From assembly GCF_006345805.1 (NCBI RefSeq), contig NC_043010.1, positions 36,022,001 through 36,086,000 of the forward strand: DNA of 64,000 nt, read 5' to 3'. Source of the stretch: Octopus sinensis. Taxonomy: Eukaryota. Positions within the stretch are counted from its first letter, which is position 1. Every line of letters begins with the position of its first letter. The notes below the pieces were generated by a model. It ran no database searches. It worked only from the letters and a program-made list of their open reading frames with translations, and was not told the DNA's origin. This document shows positions 36,665 to 59,335 of the stretch, in pieces. Both the position numbers and the translations under genes were made by a program.

Positions 36665-36966
36665 TTAAAGACGGCACAAGAGTTGTGTTGACTTGTGACC
36701 CCAGATGTGGACGTGTTCTAGCAATGAATCCATTAAGGATTCCAGGCGATGCTCCACTGGGGACGGTGATGGGAGCAACAAAGTCAGACGAAGACGGATA
36801 TGAGATCTGACAATATGGGAAGCAATTTGAATGGTATGCGATGAGCAAGGGAGGAGACCTGTTGAAGAGACCAAGACAAACCATGGGACCGGATCACTGC
36901 ATTTTGATGTTTCGCTCTTGAACGATTCCTCTACCATTTTCTCTTGTTCTGCTGACATAGAACAAG
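36665..36966 (-). CDS. ALLC-like: ALLC-like terminal exon 11 (A-CSMSAEQE...PWFVLVSSTGLLPCSSH...HIRLRLTLLLPS...QLLCRL*)
   Basis: ttttctcttgcag|CT, 302 nt to TAA at 36667-36665; contains the supplied ORF 36665..36958. Confidence 0.88.
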
Positions 36967-39601
36967 CTGCAAGAGAAAAGCAAATCTAAAACATTATCCC
37001 CAATCAAGAAATGTGTGTAATTACATATATATGTATGAGGTGAAGTCAGAAATTATCAACACTTTCACAATAACATCATCATCATCATCATCATCGTTTA
37101 ACGTCCACTTTCCATGCAGGCATGGGTTGGACGATTTTGACTGAGGGCTGACGAACCAGATAGTTGCACCAGGCTCCAATCTTGATTTAGCAGAGTTTCT
37201 ACAGCTGGATGCTCTTCCTAATGCCAACCACTCCAAGAGTGTAGTGGGTGCTTTTTACGTGCCACCGGCATGAGGGCCAGTCAGTTAGTACTGGCAACGA
37301 CCTTGCTCGAATCCTTTTACACATGGCACCAGCACAGGTGCCAGTAAGACGACTTTGGTAACGATCATGCTCGAATGGTGCCCTTTTACGTGCCACTGGC
37401 ATGGAAGCCAGTTGGCTGCTCTGGCAACGATCACACTCGGATGGTGCTCTTGGCATCCTACTAGCACGGGCACAAGTGCCAGTAAGGCGAGTAACATACC
37501 TTTATTATTGTCATATTGTCTTCTGTGCAGGCGTGCTTATAGTTGGTACTATAGGGGGCACGTGATCAGAGTTTGAGCCTGATCACAACATTTTTCTTTC
37601 TGGCTTTACAGTGTAAGCATGGCCACTCCACTAGCAATAGAACAAAGAGCAGTGATCCAAGAGACAGTAAAGGTGAACTGGTTCACCATTACCATCTCTT
37701 GGGCTTGCTGAATCTTCTCATCAGTGGTGGAGGTTGTCCTGCTTCCTCTTCATGCGTCATGCTTGTCCAGTCACTTATAAACTTCTTGATCCACTCATAC
37801 ACACTTCTATGTGGTAGAGCACTGTCCCCCGTTTTGTGCTAAAAGCCACCAATGAATTTTAGCACCTGACACAACTTTCATCCAGTGAAATTGGATCACT
37901 GCTCTTTGTTCTCCTTTGGTGCTCATTGCTAGTGGAGTGGCCATGCTTACACTGTGAAGCCAGAAAGAAAAAGGGTACAATCAGGCTCAAACTTCCATCA
38001 CATGACCACAATAGTACCAACTATAAGCACACATGCACAGAAGTGAGTGTGACAATAATAAATATATGTTATGGCAAAAGTGTGGATAATTTTTTACTTC
38101 TCCTTGTACGTGGGTGTATGTCTGTTTGAACGCATGTGCGTGTGTGCATGCATATGTGCATAAAGGCACATGTACATGTATAGATGTATATGCAAGCATT
38201 TACATGTTATATGCATTATGCCTTCTCTCAGACTCCTATAGACTACCTAACCATGCCATCTCCCTCTTTTGCTGTCCCCACTGGCAACTGTATCATCTTA
38301 CTATTCTTGCTGATCACCACCATCTTCTCTCCCTTCTACATTCCTCTATCTTCCTCAGCCCATTGCTTTTTGCCCATCCGCTCTTCAAACCCTACCCATT
38401 TTGGCAGCCTGACCCCCAACTCATTCTCTTTACCATACAATCTTGCAAACCAGCCAACCATCCAACCACCCACTTCTACTCAGTGTGTACCTTGTGTGGG
38501 CCACCAGTGCAACTCATCAGCATTATCTCTTGCAGCTCCTACAGACCATTTTCTCTCTCAACCTTTACCTTACTACATGCGAGTAACTACGCAGGTCCTT
38601 CTACAAGAATCTGTTCTGCCCACTCCAGCTCCCACCTTATCAATACACACATAAATAAATATACACATTCAAAACACATACAGATGCACACAAACACACA
38701 CTACATATGATGCTAACTAACATAGTGAAGAACACCATTGTGCAATGAAGGAAAATCCTTACCATCAATCGTGAGGAATGCAAGGAATTTGCCAGGAAAC
38801 TTCCCTGTTTTCAGTTCAACCTGAAATGGAAATAAAGACTTGGTTAAAACTTAGTATTTCAAAGAGTTTCATTTTTTATCTTTTACTTGTTTCAGTCATT
38901 AGACTGCGTCCATGCTGGGGCACTGCTGTGAAGCATTTTAGTCAAGCAAATTGACTCCAAGTACTATTTTTTCTCTTTTTTTTAAAGCCTGCTGCTTATT
39001 CTATCACTCTCCCTTGTCAATATTCTAACTTACAGGGATGTAAACACACCAACACCAGTTGTGAAGCAGCAGTGGGGGATGAACACACACATGACAAGCT
39101 CTTTCAGTTTCCGTTTACCAAATCCAGTCACAAGGCTTTGGCCGGCCTGAGACTATAGTAGAAAACACTTGCCCAAGGTGCCACTCAGTGGGACTGAACC
39201 CAGAACCATGTGGCTAAGAAGCAAGCTTCTTACCACACAGCCACACACACACACACACATACATACATATATACATACATACACACACGACAGGCTTCCT
39301 TCAGTTTCTATCTATTAAATCCACTCAAAAGCTGGTTGGTCCAAGGCTATAGTAGAAGACACTTGCCCAAGGTAGCGCACAGTGAGACTTGAACTTGGAA
39401 CAATGTGGTTGGGAATCAAACTTATTACCACACAAACACACTTACACCTATTCTTACCACACAGCCTCACCTGTGCGGTGTTGTGGTGTGGTGAGCATGA
39501 TATAGAGAGGGTGTTATAGCCACTAACCAGCTGTAGAGGCTTTGTTTATTTTCAAAAGGACACTAGGATAGGCTACAGTGAATACAGCCCTAACACATGC
39601 T

Positions 39602-39634
<33 letters not shown>

Positions 39635-42600
39635 GTGCACAAGCCTTCCTATATTCTCATGCATACATATACAATCAAACAAAATTAAAAACAGAGTTGC
39701 TTTGCTTACTTTTGATATATTACCTGGGCAGGCCAACCTGTATATGGCCCAAACCTCCTGCCAATTTCCTGGAAAAAAACAACAGCAATAATAATAATAA
39801 TCCTTTCTACAATTGGCACAAGGCCTGAAATTTTGGGGAGGGGAGTAGTCGATTACATTGACCCCCAGTGTTTCACTGGTACTTTATCAACCCTGAACGA
39901 ATGAAAGACAAAGTCAACCCCAGCAGAATTTGAACTCAGAACATCCTGATGGATGAAATGCCACAGCATTTTACCTGGCATGCTAACAATTCTGCCAGCT
40001 CGCTACCTTAACAACAACAACAAAAACAATAACGATTTCAAATTTTGGCACAAAGCCAGTGTTCAATTGATACATGTTTATCAACCCTGAAAGGATGAAA
40101 GGCAAAGAAGACTTTAGAACATAAAGACATACAAAAATGCTGCCAAGCATTTTGCCCAGCGTAAGAATGATTCTGCTAGCTCACTGCCTTATATAATAAT
40201 AATAATAAATGCCAGGCAGTGGCTCTCATGGCTTCTGATCTTAACTGATTGGAAGTGTTATCATGTACATTGTTTTGTCTTGGTATGAAAATATTCTGCT
40301 CAATACCACAGATTTGCTTGTCAGTTGTTTGACCATAACCAGTTGAGCATGTCCCTTAGTGGCTGACAATCTGTGCATCTCTGATCACGGGCAGAAGTAG
40401 CTGGGAAGCATCATAGCCGTGTGTTGAAAGGAATTCTTGGAGGTTTGGATAATTCACCTTTGGAAACATGGGTGTTTCATTCAACGTCCTTAACCCTTTC
40501 GTTACCAACCCGGCTGAAACCGGCTCTGACTCTGAGTACAAATGTCTTGTTTTCACAAGTTTTTAATTAAAATCTTCCACCAGACTTTAATCACAATTTA
40601 TGTTCCTAACACTAGCTTAATGATAACTAAGTTATTTTACTAAATTCTTTGTTCTATTTAAAGTAATTGAAAGAAACACAGAGCATCTCAAAATAAATAC
40701 AGTAACAAAAGGGTTAAACAACCCTTATTCAGGGACCTTTTGAGTGGGATGGGTTGGTTACTCAACCAGAAGAAAATTCTAACTGGGCCCCACCTGCAAG
40801 GTCATGCGCTGTTTATCTTGATATGAGATCACCATGTTGCACACATATAGTTGTGATGCATGTGCCTGGTGTACCCTTATCAGACAGGTACTCATGATGG
40901 GTATACTGGGCTTCATATATTTTAACCCAGTGTCACTTTGATGGCATGCACTGCTCTCTCACTCAATAATAATAATAATAATAATGCACATATATTTAAA
41001 CAAATGAAACAAACAAAAATTTAATTAGAAAAAGAAATTGTGAAAATTTTTTTCCTCTCTTTCCCCTGAACCATATTAAAATACTGAAATTGTTCAAGTG
41101 AGATTGAATCCCTGATGAACTTGACAGAGTCAGAATCTCTCAGGGACAGAGTTGAAAAATCTCTTGGAATAGGAAGAGATTTGTACTGAAGAATTTTAGT
41201 TGAATAAACCCACCCCACTACGTTTATTTCTGAAGCCTTGTACTTATTCTTTAGTCTCTTTTGCTAGACCGCTAAGTCATGAGGATGTAAACACACTGAC
41301 ACTAGTTGTGAAGCAGTGGTGGAGGACAAACACAAAGACACACACACAAGAAAAAAATTACTGAGGGAAAAGATCAGTTAGGGTTAGGGTACCAGTTGAA
41401 TGCTGGGGTTGATGTAATTGATTAGCCCCTCCCTCGAAATTACTGGTCTTTTGCCAAAAGATCAGTTTCAGAGTTTAGAATTTAAAGAAAAACATGAAAA
41501 TAATAATTTAGAATTTAGAGAAAAATGTGAAAATAATAATAGACCAAAGTAAAAAAAAAGCATATGTTTAAATTTGAAGTGAATCAGTGAATTCAATGTT
41601 GAAAACAAGAGTTTAATCAGAAACCTCCAGATGTTCACAAATGCAATGCAAAAAAAAACCCATATATCAAAACAAAATTAACACACCTGCCTTGAAGATG
41701 TTCTGAGATTCGCAAATTGGTAATTGGTCATTCTAGAAGATAGAAGAGTAAAATATAAAAGAGTTATTGTAATCAGATTTCACACTGAAACAAAAAAAAA
41801 ACCTTCATACAGACATGTGCACACACACACACACACACACACACATGCATGCATAACTGTGCATGCAACAGACAAATTGTGCTAGCACCTCCTAAATATT
41901 GCCTAAAGATACAAGGAAGTTATGGTTATAATGCCATTGCTTATAAGTCTGATGACCAACAGCAACAGACCGTATTTAACTCCTTTCTCTTTGGCATCCA
42001 CAAGAAGCATACTAAAAACAGAATAAAAAGTATATGAAAGGATTGTCAGCTTACCTCCCTTGAAAACCTCTGGTAAGTGCTCAATTGACTGTCAGTGGCA
42101 GAGGGCAAGTGGATGGTTAGAGCCAGTTGTTTCATTGTAGGACAACTTGCAGCAATGCACATACTGCCATTCATTAGAGATAGTAAGTCAAGTAGCTGTA
42201 AGTTGATGGATAAGTAGGTTAAGGACAGAGTACAATTAATGATGGAAGATTCTAGAAAGGGGATGAGAGAGACAAGCAGAATGACAAAACAAAACGGAAC
42301 GTAGAAGTATAAAATAATAATATATTTTGTAACAGGATCTTTAACACAAATGCAAAAGTGGTTCTGCGGCACATGTGTGAGACAAAGTGAGTCACAAAGT
42401 TCTCCTTCAACAAGATCCAAACATCTGTGAATAAATGTGCATCGCCTTACTAGCACTTGAAAAAACATTCAAGCGAGGTCGTCGCCAGTGCCGCTGGACT
42501 GCCTCCTATGCAGGTGGCACATAAAAAGCACCATTTGAGTGTCGCCGTTGCCAGTACCGCCTGACTGGCCCTCGTGCCGGCTACACTCTCGGTGTGGTTG

Positions 42601-44652
42601 TCGTTAGGAAGGGCATCCAACTGTAGAAACTCTGTCAGATCAGACTGGAGTCTGGTGCAGCCATCTGGTTCGCCAGACCTCAGTCAAATCATCCAACCCA
42701 TGCTAGCATGGAAAGCGGGCGTTAAACGATGATGATGATGATTTCCTTTGGGTGAGAGGGCGAAACAAATTCAAAAACCAAGCCTTGTGGAAAAAAGGCA
42801 AACCAACAACCTACTGAAACCAAGACCTAGAGAAGGAAATGGGGTTAGCTGCATCAAATGCTATGGAAACCTGTTATCAACATTACAAAGCAAGCCCTCC
42901 GGTGTGACACTCCAAAGGAGATGCAAGTGTGGCAGGCCAAAAACAAAATGAAGATCCATTGAAACTGTAGAGGTGTATGGCCTAGTGGTTGGGGTATTGG
43001 ACTCATGATCATAACATTGTGGTTTCAATTCCTGGACCGGGCAACAAGTAGTGTTCTTGAGCAAAGCACTTCATTTCATGTTGCTCCATTCCACTCAAAA
43101 AATGAGTAATCCTGCAACGGACTGGTATCCCATCCAGGTAGGGAATTTATATGCCATGGAAACCGGCCCTTATGAGTTAGCATGATTCAAGAAGATAACT
43201 TAGGTAACTTTACAGAAACTGAACACTGACAGGGGAATAAATGTAATCAATTACCACAGATCAAAATCGATAGAGATATTTTATTGACACCCTATGCTCA
43301 ACATGGAGTTAAAAAAGGATTAAGAAGAAGATTTTCTGTTATATGTGAAGTGTATTTTGTTATATCACGTAATTAAAATCTTTTTCTGAAGCATTGTTAT
43401 GTTTTGAAAATCAGACACCTAAAATCATTTTTTATAAAAATACTGGTAAGTTTTTTAGCCATGGCTTCCAGGTTCAGTCCTGCAGCATGGCATTTTTGTC
43501 AAGTGTCTTCTATCATAGCCTGAAATTGACTAAAGCCTTGTGAGCAGATTTGGTAGATGGAAACTGAAAGAAGACTGTCATATACATGTGTGTCAACTGC
43601 TTGTTCCTCATCACTGCTTGACAACCATTGTTGGTGTGTTTATGTCCAGATAACTTAATGGTTTGGCAACAGGCTTTACAAAAAAATATTCATTTGAATA
43701 AAATTGCTCAAGGCAGTGTCCCTGCATGGCCAGTCACATAACTGAAACAAGTAAAAGCTAAAAGATGTATATAATATATCGTTGCTTTTATGCAAAAGTG
43801 TCGTTAAGTCCAAAACATTGCTTTTTCAGAAAATGAAAAATTAGTTTCACCATTCCATAGCAAAATCATTGTAATCATCATCATCATTATCATCATCCAG
43901 TGTTTTAAGTCTGAGTTTTGTTCCCATTAATGGGGGTGGCTGGACCTACTTCAATGCCATAGCAACTGAGGCAGGCAGGTGCAGCCCACCACAACCTTTG
44001 GACTAGCTGGTGCCCATTCTCCCTTGCTATCATGAAGCATTTTTGGAGCTGGATTTTCTACAGGGAGCATGCCCTTGCTTAATACACTTTGACAATTTTT
44101 GATGTCTTGGCATCTGAAGCAGCTGGAGATACAATAGTTTGACAAAAAGAACTGGCTATTGCAAGCAAAAGTAAATATTGAAAAAAGAACATATTTGGCT
44201 AAATTTGGACATACAACAGTTTAACACAATAGCAATGATATATATTCTTTTATTGTTTTACTTGTTTCAGTCATTTTGACTATGACCGGGCTGGTGCACC
44301 GCCTTTCAGTGGAAGAAATTGACTCCTGAACTTATTCTTTGTAAGCCTGGTACTTACTCTATTGGCCTCTTATCCCGAACCACTAAGTTATAGGGATGTA
44401 AACACACCAAGATTGGTTGTCAAGCAATGGTGGAGAGACAAACAGAGACACAAACACACAAAGATGGATGGATGGATAGATATACATGACAGGCTTCTTT
44501 CAGTTTCCGTCCACCAAATCCACTCACAAGGCTTTGGTTGGCCCAAGGCTATAGTAGAAGACACTTGCCCAAGGTGCCGTACAGTGGAACTGAACCAGGA
44601 ACCATGTGGTTGATAAGCAAGCATCATACCAGACAGCCACGCCTGCACCTAT

Positions 44653-44698
<46 letters not shown>

Positions 44699-44994
44699 AT
44701 AATAATAATAATTGTGTACAGTGCTCAGGTGCACTACAACTCATCTAAAGTGTATATATAATCAGGTGTAGTTTCGGCGGATTTCGGAAAGCATGAGGGC
44801 CTTAAAGGATGCAGTGTCATGACAGTCAACAACTGACGCAGGCAGTTTATTCCATGCTTCAGCAACTCTGAGCGTGAAAAAATGTTTCCGAAAGTCATGG
44901 GAGCTGTGTTGTTTTCTGACTTTGTAGGCATGTCCACGTGTGTTAGACACATGGAGATCAAAAAGGTGTTCAGTGTTGTTGTTGGTGAGGTGGT

Positions 44995-45032
<38 letters not shown>

Positions 45033-45696
45033 TATATAATATATATATATATCAAATATATATTTTTAAATTTATATATTTTCCTAACATTCAATTCCGA
45101 GTGCTTTCTGTGAAAATTTTGCATATTCTATGTAAGCAGCCCATATCTTTGTGGACATTCAGTGTAAATGACCCATTTCTTTGTACATATTCAGTGCAGG
45201 TGACCTATATTTTTATGCATATTCAGTGCAAGTGACCTACATATCTGTAGTTGTTTGGTTGCTCCAACTTAACTTGTAGAATAGCATCAACTTGACTTCA
45301 AATAAGAATCCCCTTGGGAAGAACTTGACCACAAAGACTGTGCCTAGTTTGGCAAGTTTGGCGCAACAAACTTGAATTCCATTTATAATATAGTTCCAAG
45401 TGGAAAATGCTGTTTCACTGGAGACAACAATATATTTCTGCATATTCTATGCAAATAACCCATATTCAGTGCAAGCTATTTATATCTTGGTGCATATTCT
45501 GCACAAACGCCCTATACTTGTAGCACGCAACCTATAATTTTGTACACATTGGTTGCAAATAACCTACATATGGCACAAATGATACACATTTTCGTGAATA
45601 TTTGTCACAAATAACATCTCTTCAATACTGATTTTATTCCTTATGGCTTAATATGATTGTTGGTTTGTTTCCCTTATATATGTGTATGTATATATA

Positions 45697-45783
<87 letters not shown>

Positions 45784-46019
45784 CTTACTTGGAAGAGGAT
45801 GCATGGCATTCAATCATATAATAATATCAATAATATATATACAGGTGCAAGAGTGGCTGTATGGTAAGTAGCTTGCTTACCAACCACATGGTTCCGGGTT
45901 CATTCCCACTGCATGGCACCTTGGGCAAGTGTCTTCTACTATAGCTTCGGGCTGACCAAAGCCTTGTGAGTGGATTTGGAAGACAGAAACTCAAAAGAAG
46001 CCCGTCGTATATATGTATG

Positions 46020-46068
<49 letters not shown>

Positions 46069-47179
46069 GTGTGTATATGTTTGTCCCCCCAACACCGCTT
46101 GACAACCGATGGTGGTGTGTTTACGTCCCCGTAACTTAGTGGTGTGGTAAAAGTGACCGATAGAATAAGTACTAGGCTGCCAAAGAATAAGTCCTGGGGG
46201 TCGATTTACTCAACTAAAGGCGGTGCTCCAGCATGACCGCAGTCAAATGACTGAAACAAGTAAAAGAGAAAAAGACAGAGAAAGATATATATATGCATAT
46301 GTGGGCACAGGACACCATGAAACGAGTACAACAAAAAATTACAAAGCACGAGTACATGGAACATGAACTATTCTTTCAAACAAATGGAAAACAAAACAAA
46401 CAACATAAAAAAACGACCCTTCATCAGTTGTTGGTTGTTTTTCTAGTCTCGTATTTCGAGCATTTAACAACAATATATATATATATATATATATGTCATA
46501 TTTGGAGATGGCAATTTGTTTTTTGCCAATAAACACACACACTATTTATTTGATCTGCTCTACCTTTATTATTATCATTATTACTAGTTGATGTCGAAAC
46601 GCAGAGTAGACGAAACAGGGACAACTGAAGAAGGGGAATATTCCTTGTGTTGTATGTCTTGTACTCTGTTTTTTCGTTGTTTGAAAAAAAGTTTGTTTCC
46701 ATGTTTTTGTTTTTATGTTTTCGTTTCTCATCGTGTTCAACGTTTTTTTGATGTTCTGTACCCATATATGCATGTATATATACATATAGATGTAGGTATG
46801 TACATATATCATCATCATCATCGTTTAACATCTGCTTTCCATGCTAGCATGGGTTGGACGGTTCAACTGGGGTCTGGGAAGCCCGAAGGCTGCACCAGTC
46901 AGATCTGGCAGTGTTTCTACAGCTGGATGCCCTTCCTAACGCCAACCACTCTGAGAGTGTAGTGGGTGATTTTATGTGCCACCGACACAGGTGCCATATA
47001 TGTATGTATATATGCATATATTTATATATTATTTATATTATTATATATATAAATGGAGAGAGAGACACAGACAGACAAAGAGAAAGAGGGGGTAGAGAGA
47101 GAGAGTAGCAGGTAAAAGAAAGAGCAAGAAGGAAACTTCAGAAACCTGAGAAAAAAAGTTGGGAACAGAGAAAGGGTAA

Positions 47180-47222
<43 letters not shown>

Positions 47223-47694
47223 ACTAAGTACATGAAGCATGAACCAAAAACAAACTGTTCTCACCTGATCACATGATACATGAGATAAATCAGGCCAAGG
47301 TTCACCATAAATGCGAAGACGTGCTATACCGCAACCTGACAGAGAAGAAGGATATTCATTAAAACGAAAAATATAGAATTATGGTGGAGGTCACAACACA
47401 CACACTTTGACACTGACCCAACAGGATTTTAGGCTGCCCAACCAATATGTTTACAAGTTTTAATGTTACTTAGTGTATAAACAATACGCATGCAGGCAGG
47501 AGGTACAATTGCTGTGTGATTCATGTGCTAGACTACTGAAAATGTGTAAAGAAGTAGAAACATCTCCAAAGCTCCAATAGGCTCTTTCAGGAACTAACGC
47601 TCAAGTTGGGAGACATGAGACATGTAAACGCATACAAGGTAAGCTGCCAGCCTGTCACAAGTAAGTATTTCCAGATGATCATGCGTATATGTAT

Positions 47695-47740
<46 letters not shown>

Positions 47741-50700
47741 CACTTCATATACACAATGTAAAGATGCAAGCTACTAACAGTTTCTTGTATTAGAGACACA
47801 GGTCTAGGCAGGTTTTTATAATACACTGTGTCTCCACATTTATACCACAGTAAATTATATATATATATGAGTGTGTGTGTGTGTGTGTGTGTAAATATAT
47901 ATTGATATGGCTGGGTGATTAAAAAGTCTGCTTTACAACCATGTCGTTTTGTGTTCAGTTCTACAGTGTGGTTGGTACTTTCTGCAAGTGCCTTCCACTA
48001 TAGTCCTAAGCCAGTTCATAATACTCAGTTGCAGGCAGGTCACTTCACACAGCTAATGGCCTTTAGATGATATATGAATTAAACACAAAAAACACTCTTT
48101 TTTTTTTTTACTTCCCATAAAAACCTTAAAGTTACTTGTTGACTGAATAAAAACCTTGACAGGTAAACCTTGTCTATGTAAAGTCAACATTTGAGGCTGA
48201 GGCTAAATGTAAACTAATGAAACACAACATACCAGAAAACACATTAAGGCGTACATGTGTCCACGGCTTTTTGTGGGAGATTGCAAAGAAATTGTGACAA
48301 CAAGCAAGGTAACCTGGTTCTAATGAGCTTGATGGTACTAATTCTTCCCATTTCTGGAAAATAAACAGAATAAGGAATGAAGGGTAATGGAAGTGGTAGT
48401 AGTAGTGGTGTGGTAATTATTGTAGTAATGATGATGATGATGATGATGGTGGTGGAGGTGGTGGTGATGGTGATGATGGTAGTGCAAGAGTTGAACAAAG
48501 GGGGTGCTGAAAAATTCCTGGCTTTGGGTAAAAGAAAATACAGGAGGATCAGTTAATTATGATCTTATTCAACATATTCCCTGCTCAGATTCACACTCAT
48601 TGCAGTGGTCCTTCAACCCTGTAAAAGAACTTCGAAAGTTGGGCCTCCAGCCAGGCTTTTCACAATACCCTTAAAGCCAAAAACTTTTCAGCACCCCTTG
48701 TATAGTATTGGCAGTAGTTACGATATCAGAAGGGATCAAAGCACTGTTGGGTCAGCTCTGATCAAGCAGACATACAATTAAAGGCAATCCAGCCATGAAC
48801 ATCCCATCTTTCATTCAGACAAACTATATTGAAAAATACATTATTCAATGTCTCCCTTCTTGTTTTTTTTTTTAAGACAACAGGATCTGAACTGAGGTAG
48901 ATTTGGCTGCTATTATTCATAGCAAACAAGACCACATAGAGGCTTGTTTGTTAGCTAATCAGTGATGATGATGAGGAAGAGGAGAATACGAGTGGTGGAG
49001 ATGATGTTCTATTGGGAAACATTACAGGAATTATAGCAGTGATAATGACAGCAATAGCGCTTACAATAGTATTGGTGATGGTGGTGTGGTGTTGATGATG
49101 GAGGCAAAAAGTTGTAAATAAATTAAGAAAAAAATAAAAAGAAAGAACTAAAATATATCAAAAAATATACCGTATTTGGTGAGATCTGACCAGATTCCAG
49201 AGCAGCCCCTTCAAAAGAAATTCGACGGGCATGGTTTGCAATGAAATAGGATGTGTCTATTTCAACACCATGCAATATTCCAGGAACACCTAATAATAAA
49301 AACAAACAAAAGAAAACAAATAATATTTGGAGAACATCTGGACACCAGAATGGTGTGGTTTAGAAATCAACTGTTATCAAGAAGGCACTAAGCTAGCAGA
49401 ATTGTTAGCATACCAGACAAAATGCTTAGCGATATTTTATCCATCTTTATGTTCAGAGTTCAAATTATGCCAAAGTCAACTTTGTCTTTCATTCTCTTTT
49501 GGGGGTCGATAAAATAAGTACCAGTTCAACAAAAGGGATGATGTAATCAACTTAGTCCTTCCTTTGAAATTGCTGGACTTTTGCTAAAATTTGAAATTAT
49601 TATTATTATTGTTAAGGTGGCGAGCACACAGAATTGTTAGCACGCTGGACGAAATGCTTAGCAGTATTTCATCTGCCACTACAATCTAAGTTCAAATTCC
49701 GCAGAGGTTGACTTTGCCTTTCATCCTTTCGGAGTCAATAAAATAAGTACTAGTTGAACACTGGTAAGTCTATGTAATCGACTTAACTCTCCACCCAAAA
49801 TTGCTGCCCTTGTGGAAAATTTTGAAACCATTATTATTATCATTATTATTAAGGCAGCAAGCTGGCAGAATTGTTAACACACTGGGCAAAAAGCTTAGCA
49901 GCATTTTGTCTGTCTTTTACATTCTGATTTCAAATTCTGCCAAGGCCAACTTTGCCTTTCATCCTTTTGGGGTCAATGAAATATGTACCAGTTGAGCACT
50001 GGGGTCGACGTAATCAACTAGCCACTTCCCCCAAAATTTCAGGCCTTGTGTCAATGGTAGAAAAGATTATTAAAAGTAAACATAAAAACAAGCATTTTAT
50101 ATATATATCATCATCATCATCATTGTTGAACGTCCGTTTTCCATGCTGGCATGGGTTGGATGGTTCGACTGGGGTCTGGGAAGCCAAGAGGCTGCACCAG
50201 GCCCCAGTCTGATCTGGCAGTGCTTCTACGGCTGGATGCCCTTTCTAACGCCAACCACTCTGAGAGTGTAGTGGGTGCTTTTTATGTGCCACCGGCACAG
50301 AGGCCAGAGGAGCTGGCATCAACCTCAATTGGATGGTGCTTTTTACGTGCTACCAGCACAGGGCTCACAACTACAATTTCCATTTGATTTGATTTTGATA
50401 TTGCTGTTGATGTTGATGTACTTGACTCAATAGGTCTACTCAAGCATGGTACACATTGCATATGCATGCATGCATGCAGAGATGGATGATGAATGGAGAG
50501 ACAGATATCATCATTGTTGTAACATCCAGTTTTCCATTCTTGCATGGATCAAACAGAATTTGTTGAGGCGAATTTTTTCTACACATGTGCATGCACACAC
50601 AGAAACATATGACTAGTTCCTTGAAGTATTTGTAGTAAATTTCACTCATAGAGCATTGACAAACCCAAGGCCAAGCTAGAAGAAACTTGCCTGTAGATGA

Positions 50701-53700
50701 TCTGCTCCGATTGCAGATCAAACTTCTATATCACACAGTTATGTTTGTGCCCTTTCATAGTTGCATATATTTAAAGTTATGTTCAACACCTGGTTTAAAT
50801 TTTGCCTTTCATCCTTTTAGGAGTTGATAAAATAAGTTCCAGATGGATTGAGAGTGATTGAATCACCCACAATCCTCCTCTAAAAATTGTGGTTTCCTGC
50901 CAAATTTAGAAACCATTATTACAGGTGTGCTTGTGTGGTTTAGAAGTTGGCTTCCTAATCACATGGGTTCAGGTTCAGTCCCACTGAATGGCACCCAGAA
51001 CAAATGTCTACTATTATAACCTGAGGTCGTCCAATGCCTTTGTGAGTAGATTTGGTAGATAGAAACTGAAATAAGGCTGTAAGCTGGCAGAAACATTAGC
51101 ACATCGGGCGAAATGCTTAGTGGTATTTCGTCTGCCATTATGTTCTGAGTTCAAATTCCGCCAAGGTTGACTTTGCCTTTCATCCTTTCGGGGTTGATAA
51201 ATTAAGTACCAGTTACATACTGAGGTCAATCTAATCGACTTAATCCCTTTGTCTGTCCTTGTTTGTCCCCGCTATGTTTAGCCCCTTGTGGATAATAAAG
51301 AAATAGGAAACTGAAAAAAAGCCTTAGTCTAAATGTGCACATGTGTGTGTGTGAAGGCGGGGAGAGAGTACGTGTATGTTCGTGCCTCATCTTGATAGAA
51401 TTTGATGGTTGTAAAATGATTATCATTATCATGCAAGCAGTAACATTCATTTCTGATATTCTATGAAAACTCGTCTGACCATGGTGAAATATTACCTTGC
51501 TTGGAAACAGATGAGGGTTGGTGAGAGGAAAGGCATCCAGCTGTAGAAAATCTGCCTCAATAAACTCTGCCTGACCCATGCAAGTATGGAAGAGTGGTCA
51601 TGAAACTGATGATGATGATATATGCTTATAGAGAAGGCTGGAAGAGAAAGAGAGTGAGAAAAATGGAAAAGATAAAGAAAAGCAGTATGAGAAGTGATGA
51701 AGAGAAAGGCAGAGAAGAGGAGACAAAATGATGGAGCGGGGGGGAGAAAATGGGGTGATGTAAGATGGAAGAGAAAGATGAAGAAAAGTGAAAATGAGGA
51801 AGGGATGAGACAGGCAAGAAAGAGAAATGGAGAGATGGGCTTAGAGGCCAGGAGATGATAAGCGTGAAACATTATTCATAGATGATGTCAGACAATGCAG
51901 GAGAGAAAAGCAACCGAGTAAATTACATTCACTCAAGACATAAAAAAAAAAACAAATTACCACTACTAACCTAACTGTACAATGCACCAATTTGGCTCTC
52001 CGATATCAAATGCTTGCCAACCATCCATGGGTTGCTGGTCGAGATTCCTAATTCTGCTTTCCTTCCACTGAGGTTTTGCAGTCTGGGACAAAATATACTT
52101 AATGTTATTATTAGAAACAATTATTATTATTATTATTATTATTAAACCTTTCGTTACCAACCCGGCTGAAACCGGCTCTGGCTCTGTAGTACAAATGACT
52201 TGTTTTCATAAGTTCGGAATTAAAATCTTCCACGAAACCTTAGTCACACTTTATGCTCCTAACACTAGCTAAATGATAACTAAGTTATTTTACTAAATTC
52301 TTTGTTATATTTAAAGTAATTGAAAGAAACGCAGAGCATCTCAAAATAAATACAGTAACAAAAGGGTTAAAGGCATTGAAGTGGCAAAATTGTTAGGGTG
52401 TTTAACAACATTTCATCCGTCTTTACATTCTGAATTCAAATTCCGCTGAGGTCAACTTTACCTTTCATTCTTACAGAGTCAATGAAATAAGTACCAGTTG
52501 AGCACTGGGGTTGATATAATCGACTAGTCCCCGCCCTCAAAATTTCAGGCCTTGTACCTATAGCAGAAATCATTATCATTATTCTTATTATTATTATTGT
52601 CATTTTGAGTTTAAATCCTGTGAAGGTCAACTTTGCCTTTCATCCTCTCAGGCTCAATAAAACACATACCAACCAAATACTGGGGTCGATGTCATCAACT
52701 TTCCTCACTCCCTTCAAATTTACTGGCCTGGTACCAAAATTATTATTATTATTATTATTGTTATTATTATCAAGATGGCATGCTGGCGTTAGGAAGGGCA
52801 TCCAACCATAGAAATCATGCCAAATCAGACTAGAACTTGGTGTAACTCTCCAGCTTATCAGTTCTAGTCAAACCAGCTAACCCACGCCAGCATGGAAAGC
52901 AGATGCTAAACTAGAAAACCACTCAGAGAGTGCAGACCTCTTGGAAATAGCAACGCCACCATAGGTTATGTGGAAACGATGAACGTGTTTTCAAGGGAGA
53001 TAATCAAAGAACGTAACATTGCAAAGGAAATATAACAAATGAAAAATCCTTATAGAATCCATAAATCACTACCAAAATTTCATGATCTGTTCCTTGTGTC
53101 ATTACCAACATTTCCTGCAAGTTTCATCAAATATCGTTCACAACCTTTTGAGTTATTTTGCACACAGACGGACAAACCAAACACGATGCAAACATAACCT
53201 CCTTCCTTGGTAGAGGTAATGATTATTATTATTATTATTAAGATGGCATGCTGATAGAATTATTAGAGCTTTGAACATAATACTTCATGATATTTCCGGT
53301 GCTTTATGTTCTGAGCTCAGACTCTGCCAGGGGGGAATTTGCCTTTCATCTTTTCCTTCTATTTTTTTTCCTAATATGCCCTTCTTCCTTTGAATAAGCA
53401 ATTTTAAAATTTTGCAAAAAAAAAAAACCTCTGCTCCACATTTACAGACAGTAGTGCCATTTTCCTATCTATTACCAAAGAATCTATTAGAAGAAAACTA
53501 GTTATTTCTCACTGCAAGAACACATAAATTACAGAATAACAGGTGTTACCTTTAAGAGATTTCCCACGCTGTTAGCAATTTCACTGGTTGCATATTGGAT
53601 CTTCCCACCAATCTGAAACAGAAGCAAATAAAATAACTATTAAGATTTTCAACTTAAAATATCAGATGTTACAAGCGTTGTTATGTAGTTAAGAAGCTTG

Positions 53701-56700
53701 CTTCCTAAGCATGTGGTTTCAGGTTCAATTCCACTGTGTTAGCAGCTTGGGTAAATGTTTTCTAATATGACCCTAGATCAACCAAAGCATTGAGTGGATT
53801 TGGTAGATGGAAACTGAAAGAAGCCCTATGTGTGTGTGTGTGTGTGTGTGTGTGTATACATACATTTACACACATACACACTTGTACCACATTAAAAGCA
53901 CCCAGTACATTCTATGGAGTGGTTGGCATTAGGAAGGACATCCAGCCATAGAAACCAAGCCAAAACAGACAATGGACCCTGGTGTGGCCCTTGACCTCAC
54001 CAGCTCCAGTCAAACGACCCAATCCATGCCAGCACAGAAAATGGATATTAAATGATGATGACTACACACACACACTCATATATACGTGTGTGTGTGTGCG
54101 TGTGTGTGTGCGTGTGTGTGTGTGTGTGTGTTTTGACAATATGCAATGGTTGTAAATGAACATCATACAATTGATGCTGTTCGTTTCCAATATTCTGCAG
54201 AAACATGTCTAACTATGGGAAAGTATTACATTGATAGGAAACAAGTGATGGTTAGGAACAGGAAGAGCATCCAGCAATAGAAAGCCTGCCTGAACAAATT
54301 CCACCTGACCCCTGCAAGCATGGAAAAGTGGACGTTAAATGATGATGGTAACAATAAGGACTAACTGAAGAGAGAAAAAAACTATAGACCCTATGATGGA
54401 GCCCCAGCCATGTATTTATCACTGTCTACATTAAACTGGTTCAGATCATGGAGCCTTGATAAGAGTCCTGCATCCTTATCTTGAATGTTTACACAGAGAT
54501 AAGAGAAAAGAAACTAAAAATAAGAAAGAAAACAGGTGAACAATGAAGATGAGAGAAGATCAAAGTAACAGATACACTGTCCAATGACAGAAGGTGACAC
54601 TGACGATCTACTTGACAAGTATGTGACACTTGTAGAAGAAAAAGAGATGAATATATGTGATACTTGAAATTCAAATCTGTTGCAGGGGTTTCATGTTCTA
54701 TCTGGGCAAAAAATTTAATTCTACATACCTCTCATTCAACCTAACTGTTGAAAAATATGTAGCTGACATCAAAGAATGTCACCAACATCAGACCAGTGTT
54801 TTATCTAATTAGAACCATAATTTGGATCCAATCCCGCTATATGGCCTCACAGGTAAGTCTCTTCTACCCATACTGTTACTACCATGTTTAGCTATATAAG
54901 TTACCAAAATAGGTAGATGCCATGTGTAAAGTCAGATTTATTCCTAACAATTCTGCCAGCTTGCCACCTTGAAGCCAGCTCACAATAATAATAATTATTA
55001 TTATGATTTCAAATTTTAACACAAGGCCAGTAGTTTCAAGGAAGAGGATAAGTCAATTGCATCAACTGGTACATATTTTATCGACCCCAAAAAGATGAAA
55101 GGCAATGTTGACCTTGACAGAATTTGAACTTAGAATGTAGCAGCAGACAAAATACTGCTAAGCATTTCATCCGGCTTGCTAACGATTCTGCCAGCTTGCC
55201 ATCTTAATAATAATAATTATTTCTACTCTAGGCACAAGGACTTTGAAATTTCGTGGGGAAGGGGGATAGTCGATTACATCGACCCCAGTGCATTCATCAT
55301 CATCATCATCATCATCGTTTAACGTCCGCTTTCCGCGCTAGCACGGGTTGGACGGTTTGACCGGGGTCTGGGAAGCCAGGGGCCGCTCCAGGCCCCAGTC
55401 TGATTTGGCAGAGTTTCTACGGCTGGATGCCCTTCCTAACGCCAACCACTCCGTGAGTGGATTGGGTGCTTTTTACGTGCCCCCTGCACAGGGGCCGGGG
55501 GGTCCGGCATTGGTCGCGATCGGTTCGAGCTTTTAACGTGCCAGCGGCACGGGGGCAACTGGGTCCGGGGTACTTGGGGATCCGGGGTACTTTGGGGATC
55601 TGGGGTACTTTGGGGATCCGGGGTACTTTGAATGGGTAGGGGGTATGTGGAATTGCTGCAGAAAGCAGCCCGGGTCTTTGCAGTCACAGCATATCTCCAG
55701 AGATCTCGGTCTTTTGCCATTGCCTCAGTGAGGCCCAATGCTCTGAGGTCATGCTTGACTACCTCATCCCATGTCTTCCTGGGTCTACCTCTCCCCCTGA
55801 TACCTTCAACTGTTTGGGAGTGGCACTTCTTCACACATCTCTCTTCATCCATCCGCAGCACATGACCATACCATCGCAAGCGTCGCTCTTGCACACCACA
55901 TCTGATGCTTCTTATATCCAGCATTTCTCTTAGGATGCTTACACTCTGTCTTGCATGCACACTGACACTACACATCCAGCGGATCATGCTAGCTTCATTT
56001 CTTTCAAGTCTACGCATGTCCTCTGCAGTCACTGCCAATGTTTCATTACCGTGAAGCATGGCAGTTCGCACACATGCATCATACAATCTACCTTTCGCTC
56101 TGAGGGAGAGACCTTTTGTTGCCAGTAGGGGTAGGAGCTTTCTGAACTTTGCCCAGGCTATTCGTATTCTAGTGGTGATACTCTCTGTGCATCCACCTCC
56201 GCTACTAACTTGGTCACCCAGGTAGCGGAAACTATCAACTACTTCTAGTTTTACTAGTACATATTTCATTGATAATGATAACAATGGTTTCAAATTTTGG
56301 CACAAGGCCAGCAATTTCAGGGGAGGAGGCAAGTCAACTATATCAACCCCAGTGCTCAAACTGGTACTTATTTTATTGACCCCGAAAGGATGAAAAGCAA
56401 AGACAACCCTGGTGGAATTTAAACTCAGATGCTAACACATCTGCCAGCTTGCCACTTTAATAATAATAATAATGATAATTTCTAACAAAAATATAAGACC
56501 AGAAACTTGAAGGAGAGGAGTTAATTCACTAAATCAACACTAATAATTAACTTGTGCTTTATTTTATCGACTTCGAAAGGATGAAAAGGGAAAATGATAA
56601 AATGACCTTTGCAGAATTTGAACTCAGAATGTAAGAGTGAGAACTTTGCCTTTCATCCTTAACCCCTTAATGGATTATCCCAAGTTTACTCGTGCATCAC

Positions 56701-58604
56701 AAATGAATCTTTTTAGAACCAGACGAGTATACTCGGTTAAAATTAACTTTTAGTTTTAGCACTCAAGAGTTTATTTGTTTTGTGTTGTTTCATTTTTGAG
56801 CGATCACGAATTTACTCACGTTGTCGTACGCCTGGCAGCACATATTCTGGTGCCATTTCAAAGAATTTATGCTTCTGAGTTTTGAACTTTTACTTCAGTG
56901 CTTACTCAGATTCAGAAGGAGGTTGATGTCATTTTAGAACCATCTCCTTTTGATTCTCTATTATTTATACAAACAAGAGAATTATTGAAGCATTTGTTTT
57001 CCTCAAAAATGGATGAAGATTTAGATATATTCAGCGATCACGAAAGCGATTTTTCATTTCACGATCTGGAAAGCTCTGGGGATGAACTAGACACGTGTAG
57101 TTCAGACTCTGACAATTTTTCAGAAGATGACAAAGAAAATAACCAGATAGATGCACGATCATGGCACGAAATCAATTGCTTGACCGATTCAAAGAGAAAA
57201 CAGATACATGTGTAATGTCTGCAAGATAACTTTGTGTGTAACTCCTTGTTTCAAAAATTATCATTCTAAATAAACTGTCTATCTCATTTTAAAACAATTT
57301 TCCTTTGATTTAAAAGCAATACATCTTATAAAAAAATCGAAGATAGTTAAGTTATATGTATTTTTTCAATGTCCAAGTTAACTCGTTTAAATCCAAATGA
57401 GTAAAAGTACATTTTAATTTCAAAAATAAAAAATAAAGGAAACAAAATAAGAAAAATTTTTTTTTTTGTAATTAACACAATGTATATAATTAAAAAGGGA
57501 AATAAAAAAATATGCTCTGAAATGAAACGCCATGTAAAAATAATTGATCTATTAAGGGCGACAAAAAGTACCAGTCAAATATGACAAATTTTATTGACTC
57601 ATCAAATCTGTAGTCTTTTGCTTCTGTGAGAAACTATTGTTATTATCATAATTGCCCTTGTGGCAAATAAAGAAAGAATTATTATTTTGCTTATTATACG
57701 ATAGGAGCAATTCAGTAAATTATCTCCCTTGAAAAAGCACGGGGAAAAGACTATCTTCGCGTCCCCTTGCAATGAGTTAACCGAGAAACTGTAAAAAAGA
57801 AAAAATAATCGGGCGCAGCGCACACATACACTAGTGATTCACCAATATCAATTATCAGGCAATTAACATATTAATTAACATGACAGAATATAATGTAAGC
57901 AGTTGACAAGTAAATTATTGAAGGGAAATTTAACCACACTAAAGACAAAAAAAAAAGGTGCAAGGGAAATAACCGGGTTGTTACCAAAATATAGACCACG
58001 CCGTCAGCACCAAATCCACTCTGACCTGGCAAGGCTGTGTCCTTCATTTTTTAAAATGGTGAAATGAAACTTGGGCAAGATTTGGCTGCTATTCCTAGAA
58101 ATTCGGGGGAGGACATAGAGGTTCTCTTCTTGGCCCATGAATTGATTTATCTAACATCAGATGGCAATTCCCACTCAGGTTGATGATGTCTTTCATCAAC
58201 CTGCTGTAGATAAAATACATAGCAGGCCAGAACTGGGGAGTAATACAACTGACCTTAATATTCAAAGTGCTGCCCCGGCACGGCCATAGTGCTATGACTA
58301 TAAAGAATAATAGAATCCTTAATAGTCACCATTTTAACATCTACTTTTCCATTTTTGCCTGGATCAGACAAGAGTATGACAGGCAGAGTTTTCTATAGCC
58401 GGTTGTTTTTCTTATCACTAACCCCTGATTGTTTCCCAATTAAATGTGGTAGTAATGTCTCACTCTAGCAATCTGTAAACAGTCCAGCCATGTTTACATG
58501 GAGAACTGAAAAAAAGATAACAAAAAACCAATAAAAGAAACCTTTTGATTACAAAGGTCGTACAATATGCCAAGACATGTCAAGAAGCCCAATCGTGCTT
58601 TCAT
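36665..58604 (-). CDS. ALLC-like: Allantoicase-like protein, highly divergent (11 coding exons, 384 aa; whole-gene span)
   Basis: Exons 58604-58542, 53612-53550, 52082-51971, 49289-49171, 48353-48233, 47335-47265, 42195-42055, 41732-41687, 39768-39710, 38820-38763 and 36966-36665 join through GT-AG introns into one 1155-nt ORF. Motifs IGGKIQYAT, MDGW..NWCIVQLGVPG, WTHVRLNVFSGCGIARLRIYG and WAIYRLACPG follow the order of the allantoicase fold as recalled from known family members. Confidence 0.88.
37492..38109 (-). mobile_element. Mariner 5'-end foldback element in the last ALLC-like intron
   Basis: Inverted arms 37492-37660 and 37891-38071 both contain the transposase start MATPLA..EQRAVIQ. 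The interior encodes an HTH-like VYEWIKKF segment (frameshift near 37828). Terminus TA|caaggagaagtaaaaaattatcc on the right. Confidence 0.8.
38763..38820 (-). CDS. ALLC-like: ALLC-like exon 10 (VELKTGKFPGKFLAFLTID-A)
   Basis: catttcag|GTT...GATG|gtaagg, 58 nt, phase 0/1; aligns to IEIDTxxFxGNxPxxxxVDG. Confidence 0.88.
39710..39768 (-). CDS. ALLC-like: ALLC-like exon 9 (G-NWQEVWAIYRLACPGNISK)
   Basis: tttttccag|GA...AAA|gtaagc, 59 nt, phase 1/0; aligns to EWAVFRLAHPGVITR. Confidence 0.9.
40210..40985 (+). mobile_element. ~550-bp retroposon with (AAT)n tail, interrupted by MITE A; second copy at 13630-14180 minus
   Basis: Both copies share the same 5' start (caggcag.ggctctcat) and 3' tail. 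Confidence 0.65.
41687..41732 (-). CDS. ALLC-like: ALLC-like exon 8 (NDQLPICESQNIFKA-G)
   Basis: cttctag|AAT...GCAG|gtgtgt, 46 nt; supplies the phase 0/1 bridge needed between exons 7 and 9. Confidence 0.78.
42055..42195 (-). CDS. ALLC-like: ALLC-like exon 7 (LLDLLSLMNGSMCIAAS...YQRFSRE)
   Basis: cttacag|CTA...GAG|gtaagc, 141 nt, phase 0/0; DLLSLMNGSMC aligns to DLxSxxNGGVC at the start of repeat 2. Confidence 0.85.
44690..44995 (-). mobile_element. 3' fragment of the same CR1-type LINE family
   Basis: HLFDLHVSNTRGHAYKVRKQHSSHDFRKHFFTLRVAEAWNKL, plus the shared 3' UTR gtagtgcacctgagcactgtacacaat and (ATT)n tail. Confidence 0.9.
45110..45600. repeat. Degenerate ~30-bp minisatellite (catattcagtgcaagtgacctat...) with a unique ~180-bp insert
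   Basis: Unit recurs at ~45120-45240 and ~45435-45580. Confidence 0.6.
45840..46275 (+). mobile_element. tRNA-derived CORE-type SINE (also 2630-3052 minus, 44240-44650 minus, 38880-39400, 58830-59030 and others)
   Basis: A/B-box head tggctgtatggtaag...ggttccgggttcattccc, core cttgggcaagtgtcttctactatagc, internal microsatellite, and tail ending aatgactgaaacaagtaaaag. Confidence 0.75.
47265..47335 (-). CDS. ALLC-like: ALLC-like exon 6 (G-CGIARLRIYGEPWPDLSHVSCDQ)
   Basis: ctctgtcag|GT...CAG|gtgaga, 71 nt, phase 1/0; GIARLRxYG motif. Confidence 0.93.
48233..48353 (-). CDS. ALLC-like: ALLC-like exon 5 (KWEELVPSSSLEPGYLACCHNFFAISHKKPWTHVRLNVFS-G)
   Basis: ttttccag|AAA...TCTG|gtatgt, 121 nt, phase 0/1; WxxLVPxTxLxPG..HNFF..WTHxRLN landmarks. 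Confidence 0.93.
48497..48702. mobile_element. Tc1/mariner-type MITE
   Basis: TIR acaaagggggtgctgaaaaattcctggcttt / aaagccaaaaacttttcagcaccccttgta. Confidence 0.75.
49171..49289 (-). CDS. ALLC-like: ALLC-like exon 4 (G-VPGILHGVEIDTSYFIANHARRISFEGAALESGQISPNT)
   Basis: attag|GT...ACG|gtatat, 119 nt, phase 1/0; aligns to GxIxGxDVDTSxFTGNYAPRVSIQAA. Confidence 0.92.
51971..52082 (-). CDS. ALLC-like: ALLC-like exon 3 (TAKPQWKESRIRNLDQQPMDGWQAFDIGEPNWCIVQL-G)
   Basis: cccag|ACT...TTAG|gttagt, 112 nt, phase 0/1; MDGW and WCIVQLG landmarks. Confidence 0.9.
52142..52370 (+). mobile_element. piggyBac-type MITE family A (also 24721-24950, 40490-40717, 60580-60810)
   Basis: Four ~225-bp copies, TTAA-flanked, TIR ccctttcgttac / gtaacaaaaggg. 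Confidence 0.85.
52910..53220. mobile_element. Helentron/HINE-like non-autonomous element
   Basis: actagaaaa..cactcagagagtgcagacctc start and subterminal ccttggtagaggt end. Confidence 0.4.
53550..53612 (-). CDS. ALLC-like: ALLC-like exon 2 (IGGKIQYATSEIANSVGNLLK)
   Basis: tttcag|ATT...AAG|gtaaca, 63 nt, phase 0/0; aligns to canonical [21 protein letters not shown]. Confidence 0.9.
55295..56248 (-). mobile_element. RTE-clade LINE 3' fragment (RT C-terminus + 3' UTR, (GAT)n tail)
   Basis: FRYLG..RIRIAWAKF..RRLRWYGHVLRM..GRGRPRKTW. 18-bp minisatellite (55566-55630) in the UTR. Inserted inside a SINE. Confidence 0.93.
56659..57558 (+). mobile_element. piggyBac deletion derivative
   Basis: TTAA|ccccttaatggat ... 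atctattaaggg termini; acidic N-terminus (MDEDLDIFSDHESD) next to a C-terminal Cys-rich domain RENRYMCNVCKITLCVTPCFKNYHSK* (~57195-57273). Confidence 0.8.
58542..58604 (-). CDS. ALLC-like: ALLC-like exon 1 (MKARLGFLTCLGILYDLCNQK)
   Basis: ATG plus 63 nt, donor AAG|gtttct, phase 0. LYDLCNQK|IGGK matches the LxDLAxxxxGGK start of allantoicases. An in-frame upstream ATG (MFIYCLLPT) also exists. Confidence 0.62.
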
Positions 58605-58998
58605 AGTGGGCAGCAAGCAGTAAATAAACATAAAAATATAAAACTACAAAAAAAAAAAAAACAAGCAAGCAAAACAAAAAAAAACATTATGAGCTGTCAA
58701 CATTTAAAGAGACTTATGTTGATGTTAAAATACCAGGTCACTCTTGTTTGAGCAGATGTTATGATCAAAGAAATTCCAGCTATGACCATTCTGTTGTATT
58801 TTCAGGAATGTTTATCAGCATATAGACACAGGCGTGACTGTGTGGTAAGAAGTTTGATTTCCAGCCACATGGTTCTGGATTCAGTCCCACTGTGTGGCAC
58901 CTTGAGCAAGTGTCTTCTACTACAGCCTTGGGCCAACCAAAACCTTGAGTGGATTTGGTAGACAGAAACTGATAGAAGCCCATCGTACACACACACAT

Positions 58999-59030
<32 letters not shown>

Positions 59031-59084
59031 GTATGTGTTTTTGTGTCTGTGTTTGTTCCAGTTAAAAGTTTTACATTGGGATAT

Positions 59085-59335
59085 TCAGGTTATTGGTGGA
59101 ACTGGATAGGGCGCTTCCTCAGACTAGATCAAGAAAGCGATTGTATAGTGGTACTAAAGTGGCAACCTGAGGGGAGAAGAGAAGCAGGGTTCCCCTAAAA
59201 CCACATGGCGAAGGACCATTGACAAGGAAAGAAGATGAGAAGGGTGGAGAAGTTGGAATGAGTTAGAACAGTGGCAGAAAACAAAAATGGTTGAAGAGAG
59301 GAAATTAATAAAGCAAGTATTACTCTATGTACATG
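59085..59335 (+). mobile_element. Decayed RTE-type LINE 3' end (different subfamily)
   Basis: WNWIGRFLRL..KWQPEGRR.G/PKTTWRRTI with a frameshift and a stop. Confidence 0.75.

Follow-up and report, generated by a model that had tools for sequence, protein, structure and literature searches.

In a 64-kb stretch of Octopus sinensis DNA (positions 36,022,001 to 36,086,000 of contig NC_043010.1, in the following called the window), the minus strand carries exons 2-11 of a gene annotated as allantoicase (ALLC). The gene is real, maintained by selection and not a pseudogene, and it is probably the O. sinensis ortholog of animal ALLC and not a paralog. We hold it to be rather probable that this selection-kept ortholog has lost its ancestral pockets by erosion, that its product is an expressed double jelly-roll protein with a non-ancestral role, and that allantoicase activity has probably been lost. 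The erosion of the family motifs is found in octopuses, argonauts and cuttlefish, which suggests that the protein is probably a repurposed or inactive relative of the enzyme. A search of the literature on allantoicase in cephalopods yielded nothing relevant.

According to the course of events that we propose, ALLC would have evolved very fast on the coleoid stem, and most residues of two conserved surface patches (DGWETRR, DTxxFxGN and PDGGxxRxR of each jelly-roll repeat) would have been lost. Afterwards, purifying selection of moderate strength would have preserved the gene product, in octopods and in cuttlefish, as an expressed, spliced protein with two jelly rolls, which is probably peroxisomal. 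The beta-sandwich scaffold may have been kept for a non-ancestral role in binding, in scaffolding or in a different chemistry. From the sequences we infer that allantoate hydrolysis has been lost, because the presumed substrate pockets no longer have their arginines and acidic residues, and the positions of these now drift. In the yeast allantoicase structure of Leulliot and co-workers from 2004, the two conserved patches reportedly meet in the hexamer, where the active site is said to have been proposed. If the patches do form the active site, allantoate hydrolysis by the octopus protein is very unlikely.

Loss of family motifs on a retained fold

For the analysis of conserved positions, 137 sequences including 129 canonical representatives at 50% identity were aligned using MAFFT (--auto), and columns at least 85% identical among the 129 representatives were regarded as conserved. 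The 53 columns obtained bear out the family-wide conservation of the reference motifs on which an earlier prediction for this DNA, made from the sequence alone (the original prediction), had relied. Canonical proteins deviate at a median of 2 of these columns (95th percentile 11), whereas mismatches were counted at 23 columns in O. sinensis, 25 in Argonauta and 19-21 in the decapodiforms. The changed columns of O. sinensis comprise 11 of the 30 in repeat 1 and 12 of the 23 in repeat 2, in line with the original prediction that signature motifs are replaced in both repeats and more heavily in the second. Also, the six degenerate strings listed there (MDGWQAFDIG, FIAN, SGCGIARLR, SQLSTYQR, LKTGKFPGK and LPSPSPVEHR) are all present in the annotated protein; only the alignment of the last one with PDGGVSRLR was approximate, as ...EHVHIWG, after an inserted loop, is the likelier homologous strand.

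Changes at 13 of the 53 columns are common to all four coleoid lineages, and every coleoid is without both arginines following DGWE and without the arginine of the repeat-2 motif. Among these four lineages, pairwise identity is 47% overall and 86% at the columns kept by Octopus, but 22% at the lost columns, a contrast characteristic of a scaffold that stays conserved while its former functional site is relaxed. In Argonauta hians (P0125), a low-complexity poly-D/G insertion (DDDDDGDGGNGGNGGGG; residues ~232-250) is located exactly at the canonical repeat-2 M.DGWET.RR site. Other positions became fixed: 104 columns are identical in the four coleoid lineages, and at 20 of them the residue occurs in less than 10% of canonical proteins (for example G173, C214-P215-x-M217, G284-K285 and C338). 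Such coleoid-specific invariant residues point to new constraints that would act on the protein.

The profile scores reflect the uneven divergence of the repeats. Pfam PF03561 matched the octopus protein in 2 stretches with 132.7 bits in total, above the cut-off of 27, to which repeat 1 contributed 101.2 bits and repeat 2 only a partial match of 35.9 bits (profile positions 50-139); canonical molluscs reached 318-333 bits, so that the octopus score amounts to ~40% of theirs. For the NCBIfam equivalog TIGR02961 (cut-off 277.9), both Octopus (180.1) and the Sepia-type protein (208.8) remained below the cut-off, whereas the canonical mollusc protein P0311 scored 434.3.

For the structure prediction with AlphaFold2, an alignment of 86 sequences was used as input. 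The resulting model of the octopus protein has two beta-sandwiches with a predicted local distance difference test score (pLDDT) of 86.3 and a predicted template modelling score (pTM) of 0.86; pLDDT fell below 50 solely in residues 231-245, which correspond to the former repeat-2 DGWET loop. Foldseek returned the yeast allantoicase structures 1o59 and 1sg3 as best PDB matches (E = 2e-22, target TM score 0.71-0.73), followed by generic discoidin and galactose-binding-like domains. In the model, the double jelly roll is retained as in yeast Dal2, and together with the two PF03561 matches this agrees with the allantoicase scaffold assumed in the original prediction. At the C-terminus, Octopus (-CRL) and Argonauta (-ARL) fit the consensus [SAC][KRH][LM] of the peroxisomal targeting signal 1 (PTS1), and the decapodiform -PKL is a near-match. 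This consensus is also fitted by 70 of 122 animal ALLCs, mostly with -SKL. Peroxisomal targeting is therefore plausibly retained, as far as can be told from a PTS1-like tail.

Selection, orthology and alternative explanations

Over 363 codons, O. sinensis and O. bimaculoides differ by 16 synonymous and 13 non-synonymous changes, which corresponds to a dS of 0.069, a dN of 0.0155 and a dN/dS ratio (omega) of 0.22 (NG86), with a significant non-synonymous deficit (binomial p = 1.1e-4). By part, omega is 0.16 for repeat 1 and 0.25 for repeat 2. Aligned introns of the two species show 4-7% substitutions plus indels, close to dS, and are ~88-92% identical, while the exons are 97.3% identical. A close pair of Sepia-type transcripts with 25 synonymous and 25 non-synonymous differences gave an omega of 0.26 (p = 1e-5), equal in both repeats; between the Sepia-type and another decapodiform sequence omega was ~0.15, which is only indicative as dS is saturated (1.31). 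From the Octopus and Sepia-type pairs it follows that both major coleoid lineages keep the gene under constraint and that it is not a pseudogene, and the selection supposed in the original prediction on the ground of the open frame was thus recovered by the substitution data.

Transcription was traced in Logan RNA-seq assemblies. The contigs encoding the decapodiform protein P0126 have lengths of 1.4-1.8 kb, come from several independent runs and represent spliced mRNA, because they are free of introns and contain untranslated regions. Two of these runs, SRR20545814 and SRR19578112, are Sepia esculenta transcriptome data (PMC9538352, PMC10141105). An intact open reading frame (ORF) was found in at least six coleoid taxa. 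Outside O. sinensis and O. bimaculoides, it is full length in Argonauta, in O. vulgaris and in three or more decapodiform transcripts.

To collect relatives of the octopus protein, 1.84 billion representatives were searched exhaustively with HMMER, followed by name look-ups. Besides the Octopus proteins, the coleoid matches were an 'allantoicase-like' protein of Argonauta hians (P0125, 57% identity) and P0126 (403 aa, 43% identity), which is known only from the Logan assemblies and has a related sequence, P0310. Below the coleoid clade, the matches were confined to sequences from fish, starfish, bat, mayfly and metagenomes. In a maximum-likelihood tree of 39 proteins (LG+C20), the five coleoid sequences are monophyletic (100/100) and join the ALLCs of bivalves and other molluscs (95/95). 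With 1.81 substitutions per site, the coleoid stem is very long, and further long branches lead to the octopods (1.23) and the decapodiforms (0.69), against a median tip of 0.38. The canonical mollusc transcripts P0311, P0347 and P0348 group with the bivalves. When P0311 was used as query against protein databases, the best 120 matches comprised bivalves, annelids, a nemertean, echinoderms, cnidarians and many vertebrates at 51-68% identity, and no cephalopod was among them. On the basis of the tree placement and both protein searches, the divergent gene is regarded as probably being the fast-evolving ortholog, with no canonical copy annotated. A named gastropod was likewise missing from these 120 relatives, which include many bivalves; this may indicate loss or strong divergence of gastropod ALLC, or be a mere matter of ranking.

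The term paralog used in the original prediction is thus not sustained, as the coleoid sequences form a single long-branched clade within the mollusc ALLCs and lie at the place which the species tree predicts. That the gene is a divergent paralog, freed by duplication for a new role while a canonical ALLC persists elsewhere in the cephalopod genome, is in our view improbable. A very long stem branch is a pattern often following duplication, and the evidence on copy number comes from protein databases; yet neither the HMMER search with the octopus protein nor the P0311 search disclosed a canonical cephalopod copy, despite three Octopus genomes and Argonauta being annotated in NCBI. Even less credence can be given to a decaying unitary pseudogene or to an annotation artefact produced by a chance frame and free choice of splice sites, which we regard as highly improbable. 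Heavy motif loss, above all in repeat 2, would fit with decay; the exons are short, so that a stop-free frame is not very improbable; and the 5' exons of the original prediction proved to be spurious. However, O. sinensis and O. bimaculoides share an intact ORF with the same junctions, it runs to full length in the other coleoids named above, the omega values of 0.22 and 0.26 (p <= 1e-4) come with exons more similar than introns, spliced cDNA contigs occur in several independent RNA-seq runs, and the fold is predicted confidently. Instead of a dN/dS near 1 or missing transcripts, by which a pseudogene should have been recognized according to the original prediction, constraint and spliced Sepia esculenta transcripts were found, and the pseudogene explanation is contradicted by both.

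The protein might still work as an allantoicase, or as a closely related amidinohydrolase whose substrate is ureidoglycolate or allantoate, its active site having been remodelled in either case. Coleoids would then keep the last part of the uricolytic pathway in working order; we consider this explanation unlikely. Purifying selection in two lineages, the PTS1-like tail shared with peroxisomal animal allantoicases and the much better preserved repeat 1 (101 bits in Pfam) would agree with activity, and so would DGWE, DTAYFIGH and PGGGVARLR, which are still present in the cuttlefish-type proteins. On the other hand, the 13 columns changed in all four lineages vary among them, unlike a relocated conserved active site. 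Also, both arginines after DGWE and the one of the repeat-2 motif are gone in every coleoid, the TIGR02961 scores are under the equivalog cut-off, and the loop of the repeat-2 motif is modelled with low confidence and accommodates the poly-D/G insertion of Argonauta. A further explanation is that the only coleoid ALLC has acquired a new conserved peroxisomal function through a new ligand-binding or catalytic site, as an ancient clade-specific neofunctionalisation. It would be favored by SCPxMxxLA in place of SDxHFG, TGKF in place of DTxHF, Cys338 and Gly173, which are invariant from octopus to cuttlefish and almost absent from canonical allantoicases, and we regard it as possible, though not as likely.

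Several points weigh against our preferred explanation, a selection-kept ortholog with eroded pockets. We know of no experimental definition of the catalytic residues in allantoicases, and the equation of motif and catalytic site rests on family-wide conservation; likewise, the statement on activity in the cephalopod proteins is derived from sequence. Repeat 1 of the decapodiforms still contains DGWE, DTxxFxG (as DTAYFIGH in the cuttlefish type) and PGGGVARLR, which leaves room for some catalysis, residual or altered. An omega of 0.22-0.26 means constraint, yet lies above that of typical core metabolic enzymes, and expression in Octopus itself is indicated by NCBI predicted isoforms only. Finally, a canonical second copy may exist elsewhere in a cephalopod genome, the copy number having been assessed by protein searches, and long-branch effects may have distorted the position of the coleoid clade in the tree.

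Gene model and further elements of the window

The window consists of repeat-rich eukaryotic DNA with ~38% G+C. Allantoicase-like peptides were found in minus-strand stop-to-stop ORFs between 36.6 and 53.6 kb; a single one of them (exon 4) matched PF03561 on its own, and a concatenate of the peptides matched yeast allantoicase (1SG3/1O59). When the rough concatenate was used as query, NCBI allantoicase isoform X1 of O. sinensis (P0001 = XP_029645498.1, 397 aa) was retrieved along with proteins of O. vulgaris and O. bimaculoides. Residues 35-397 of P0001 are covered with 100% identity by 10 minus-strand exons of the window between 53612 and 36665 (tblastn), i.e., by exons 2-11 of the 11 annotated ones (Table 1). 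For every junction there is a single GT-AG solution, and the junctions are identical in the O. bimaculoides locus (L001). At the place of RIFG in O. vulgaris, the protein encoded in the window has RIYG, which identifies it as that of O. sinensis.

The peptide of exon 1 (aa 1-34) was not found in any frame of the 64-kb window, and homology to O. bimaculoides begins only 174 bp downstream of exon 1 of that species; the true exon 1 is located beyond the window end. The original prediction of an intact 11-exon gene of 384 aa starting at 58604 was therefore right with respect to an allantoicase-derived, multi-exon minus-strand gene with GT-AG junctions, while the start, the first exons and the protein length have to be corrected. 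The proposed first exon (MKARLG...) lies in intron 1, and its codon 4 is TGA in O. bimaculoides. An allantoicase-like ORF at ~57.7 kb (LQGDAKIVFSPCFFKGDNLL), likewise situated in intron 1, was examined as a possible duplicate of exon 2 or substitute for it and rejected: canonical queries gave no tblastn match, no phase-compatible splice is available, and O. bimaculoides has a 5-bp indel there. The DNA around both is ~88% identical between the species, which represents ordinary intron conservation. With tblastn, no second allantoicase-like gene was found within the window.

Table 1. Exons 2-11 of the O. sinensis ALLC gene and the part of intron 1 located in the window.
Feature	Position in window	Strand	Residues	Peptide and remarks
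Exon 2	53612-53550	-	35-55	IGGKIQYATSEIANSVGNLLK; N-terminal strand of repeat 1; tblastn 100%; donor AAG/GTAACA; acceptor placed from the O. bimaculoides junction
Exon 3	52082-51971	-	56-93	TAKPQWKESRIRNLDQQPMDGWQAFDIGEPNWCIVQL; repeat-1 motif DGWETRR(K)R...DW now DGWQAFD...NW; E78->Q, R80->F, R81->D, D86->N
Exon 4	49289-49171	-	93-132	GVPGILHGVEIDTSYFIANHARRISFEGAALESGQISPNT; repeat-1 motif DTxxFxGN now DTSYFIAN
Exon 5	48353-48233	-	133-173	KWEELVPSSSLEPGYLACCHNFFAISHKKPWTHVRLNVFS; core strands of repeat 1, well conserved
Exon 6	47335-47265	-	173-196	GCGIARLRIYGEPWPDLSHVSCDQ; repeat-1 motif PDGGxARxRxxG now SGCGIARLRIYG; P172->S, D173->G, G174->C
Exon 7	42195-42055	-	197-243	LLDLLSLMNGSMCIAASCPTMKQLALTIHLPSATDSQLSTYQRFSRE; repeat 2 begins; SDxHFG...M.DGWETxRR replaced by coleoid-specific SCPxMxxLA and a degenerate loop
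Exon 8	41732-41687	-	244-259	NDQLPICESQNIFKAG
Exon 9	39768-39710	-	259-278	NWQEVWAIYRLACPGNISK; conserved repeat-2 strand W..(F)RLG.PG
Exon 10	38820-38763	-	279-298	VELKTGKFPGKFLAFLTID; repeat-2 motif IDTxHFKGNxP now LKTGKFPGKFL; D282->K, N289->K, P291->L
Exon 11	36966-36665	-	298-397	Includes stop codon; rest of repeat 2; PDGGxSRLRxxG replaced by an inserted loop, then ...EHVHIWG; ends in -CRL
Intron 1 (part), non-coding	53613-64000	-		87-89% identity to O. bimaculoides intron 1; holds the 58604 start, the 57.7-kb ORF and the ORF 56431-55436

From exon 2 to the stop codon, the gene spans 16.9 kb in O. sinensis (window 36665-53612) and 7.7 kb in O. bimaculoides (L001 14393-22134). The difference is due to the introns, which contain microsatellites as well as short interspersed repeats in many copies, with matches to several places in L001. 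Just 5' of exon 6, the in-frame peptide FRFNEYPSSLS (47336-47378, minus strand) mimics the canonical LRFNIYPDG preceding GIARLR and gives rise to spurious tblastn extensions at this exon; homology was rejected, and the resemblance was judged to be a coincidence of polypyrimidine tract and acceptor. Among the annotated isoforms, O. sinensis X2 (P0124, 376 aa) is devoid of exon 2, and the predicted O. vulgaris isoform X2 (333 aa) is devoid of exons 5-6, whereby the repeat-1 core is removed. The C-terminus differs in one annotated O. vulgaris model; the annotated isoforms P0002 and P0122 belong to the same gene.

Outside the coding exons, the remnant of a LINE-type retrotransposon was detected on the plus strand at 4828-7477. 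Its 501-aa ORF carries Exo_endo_phos_2, Exo_endo_phos and the start of RVT_1, and the rest of RVT_1 (94 bits) is encoded by an overlapping 420-aa ORF in another frame, which implies one frameshift. The 331-aa open frame on the minus strand at 55436-56431 in ALLC intron 1 (...RLRWYGHVLRMDEE...GRPRKTW...) had no Pfam match; it contains an 18-bp tandem repeat (55564-55630) and presumably resembles the region downstream of the reverse transcriptase domain in LINE ORF2 proteins. At 18295-19178 and 21139-21767, both strands carry long open frames of low-complexity repeats (poly-K/E, poly-S, poly-V and poly-T) with sub-threshold Pfam matches only; most likely these are simple-sequence DNA and not genes.

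Comparison with known allantoicases and pseudoenzymes

The octopus protein resembles the canonical allantoicase (ALLC/yeast Dal2, EC 3.5.3.4, PF03561 x2, TIGR02961, PDB 1SG3/1O59) in its two tandem jelly-roll repeats and its collinearity over the full length, length and order of the domains being unchanged. Also, the gene occupies the orthologous position in the tree, and its C-terminus is PTS1-like as in many animal ALLCs. It differs from the canonical enzyme at 23 of the 53 conserved columns, where the canonical median is 2, with motifs that are modified in repeat 1 and have largely disappeared from repeat 2, as well as by its TIGR02961 score (180 vs 277.9 required) and a Pfam score at ~40% of the canonical mollusc level. 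The automatic label 'allantoicase' in cephalopod genomes is unsafe for inferring a complete uricolytic pathway in metabolic reconstructions. With pseudoenzymes in general, the coleoid protein shares fold retention, loss of the ancestral conserved site and purifying selection across a clade, although its status as 'dead' is deduced from family-wide conservation only.

The nearest precedent is the ALLC of placental mammals, a textbook example of a gene outliving its pathway. In placental mammals and reptiles, ALLC was kept intact and expressed after loss of the allantoin-degrading pathway, and a different function is suspected (PMC10120013, PMC8920837, PMC7401351). The mammalian gene has been retained without detectable allantoicase activity (PMC7401351, PMC10120013, PMC8920837), and knock-outs in mouse had no fertility phenotype (PMC7401351). 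As in coleoids, an intact and expressed ortholog is thus present whose canonical activity is absent or doubtful. In contrast to the coleoid proteins with 19-25 of 53 columns changed, however, mammalian ALLC keeps nearly all signature residues, as exemplified by the Myotis 'probable inactive allantoicase' with changes at 6 of 53 columns. The coleoid change is also older, common to octopods and cuttlefish, and accompanied by clade-specific conserved residues. The coleoid case is independent of the mammalian one and much more diverged. The coleoid protein was kept through the whole history of octopods and cuttlefish while family-invariant patches were erased and clade-specific residues were fixed, and its gene may serve as a second natural experiment on what a non-catalytic allantoicase scaffold is used for.

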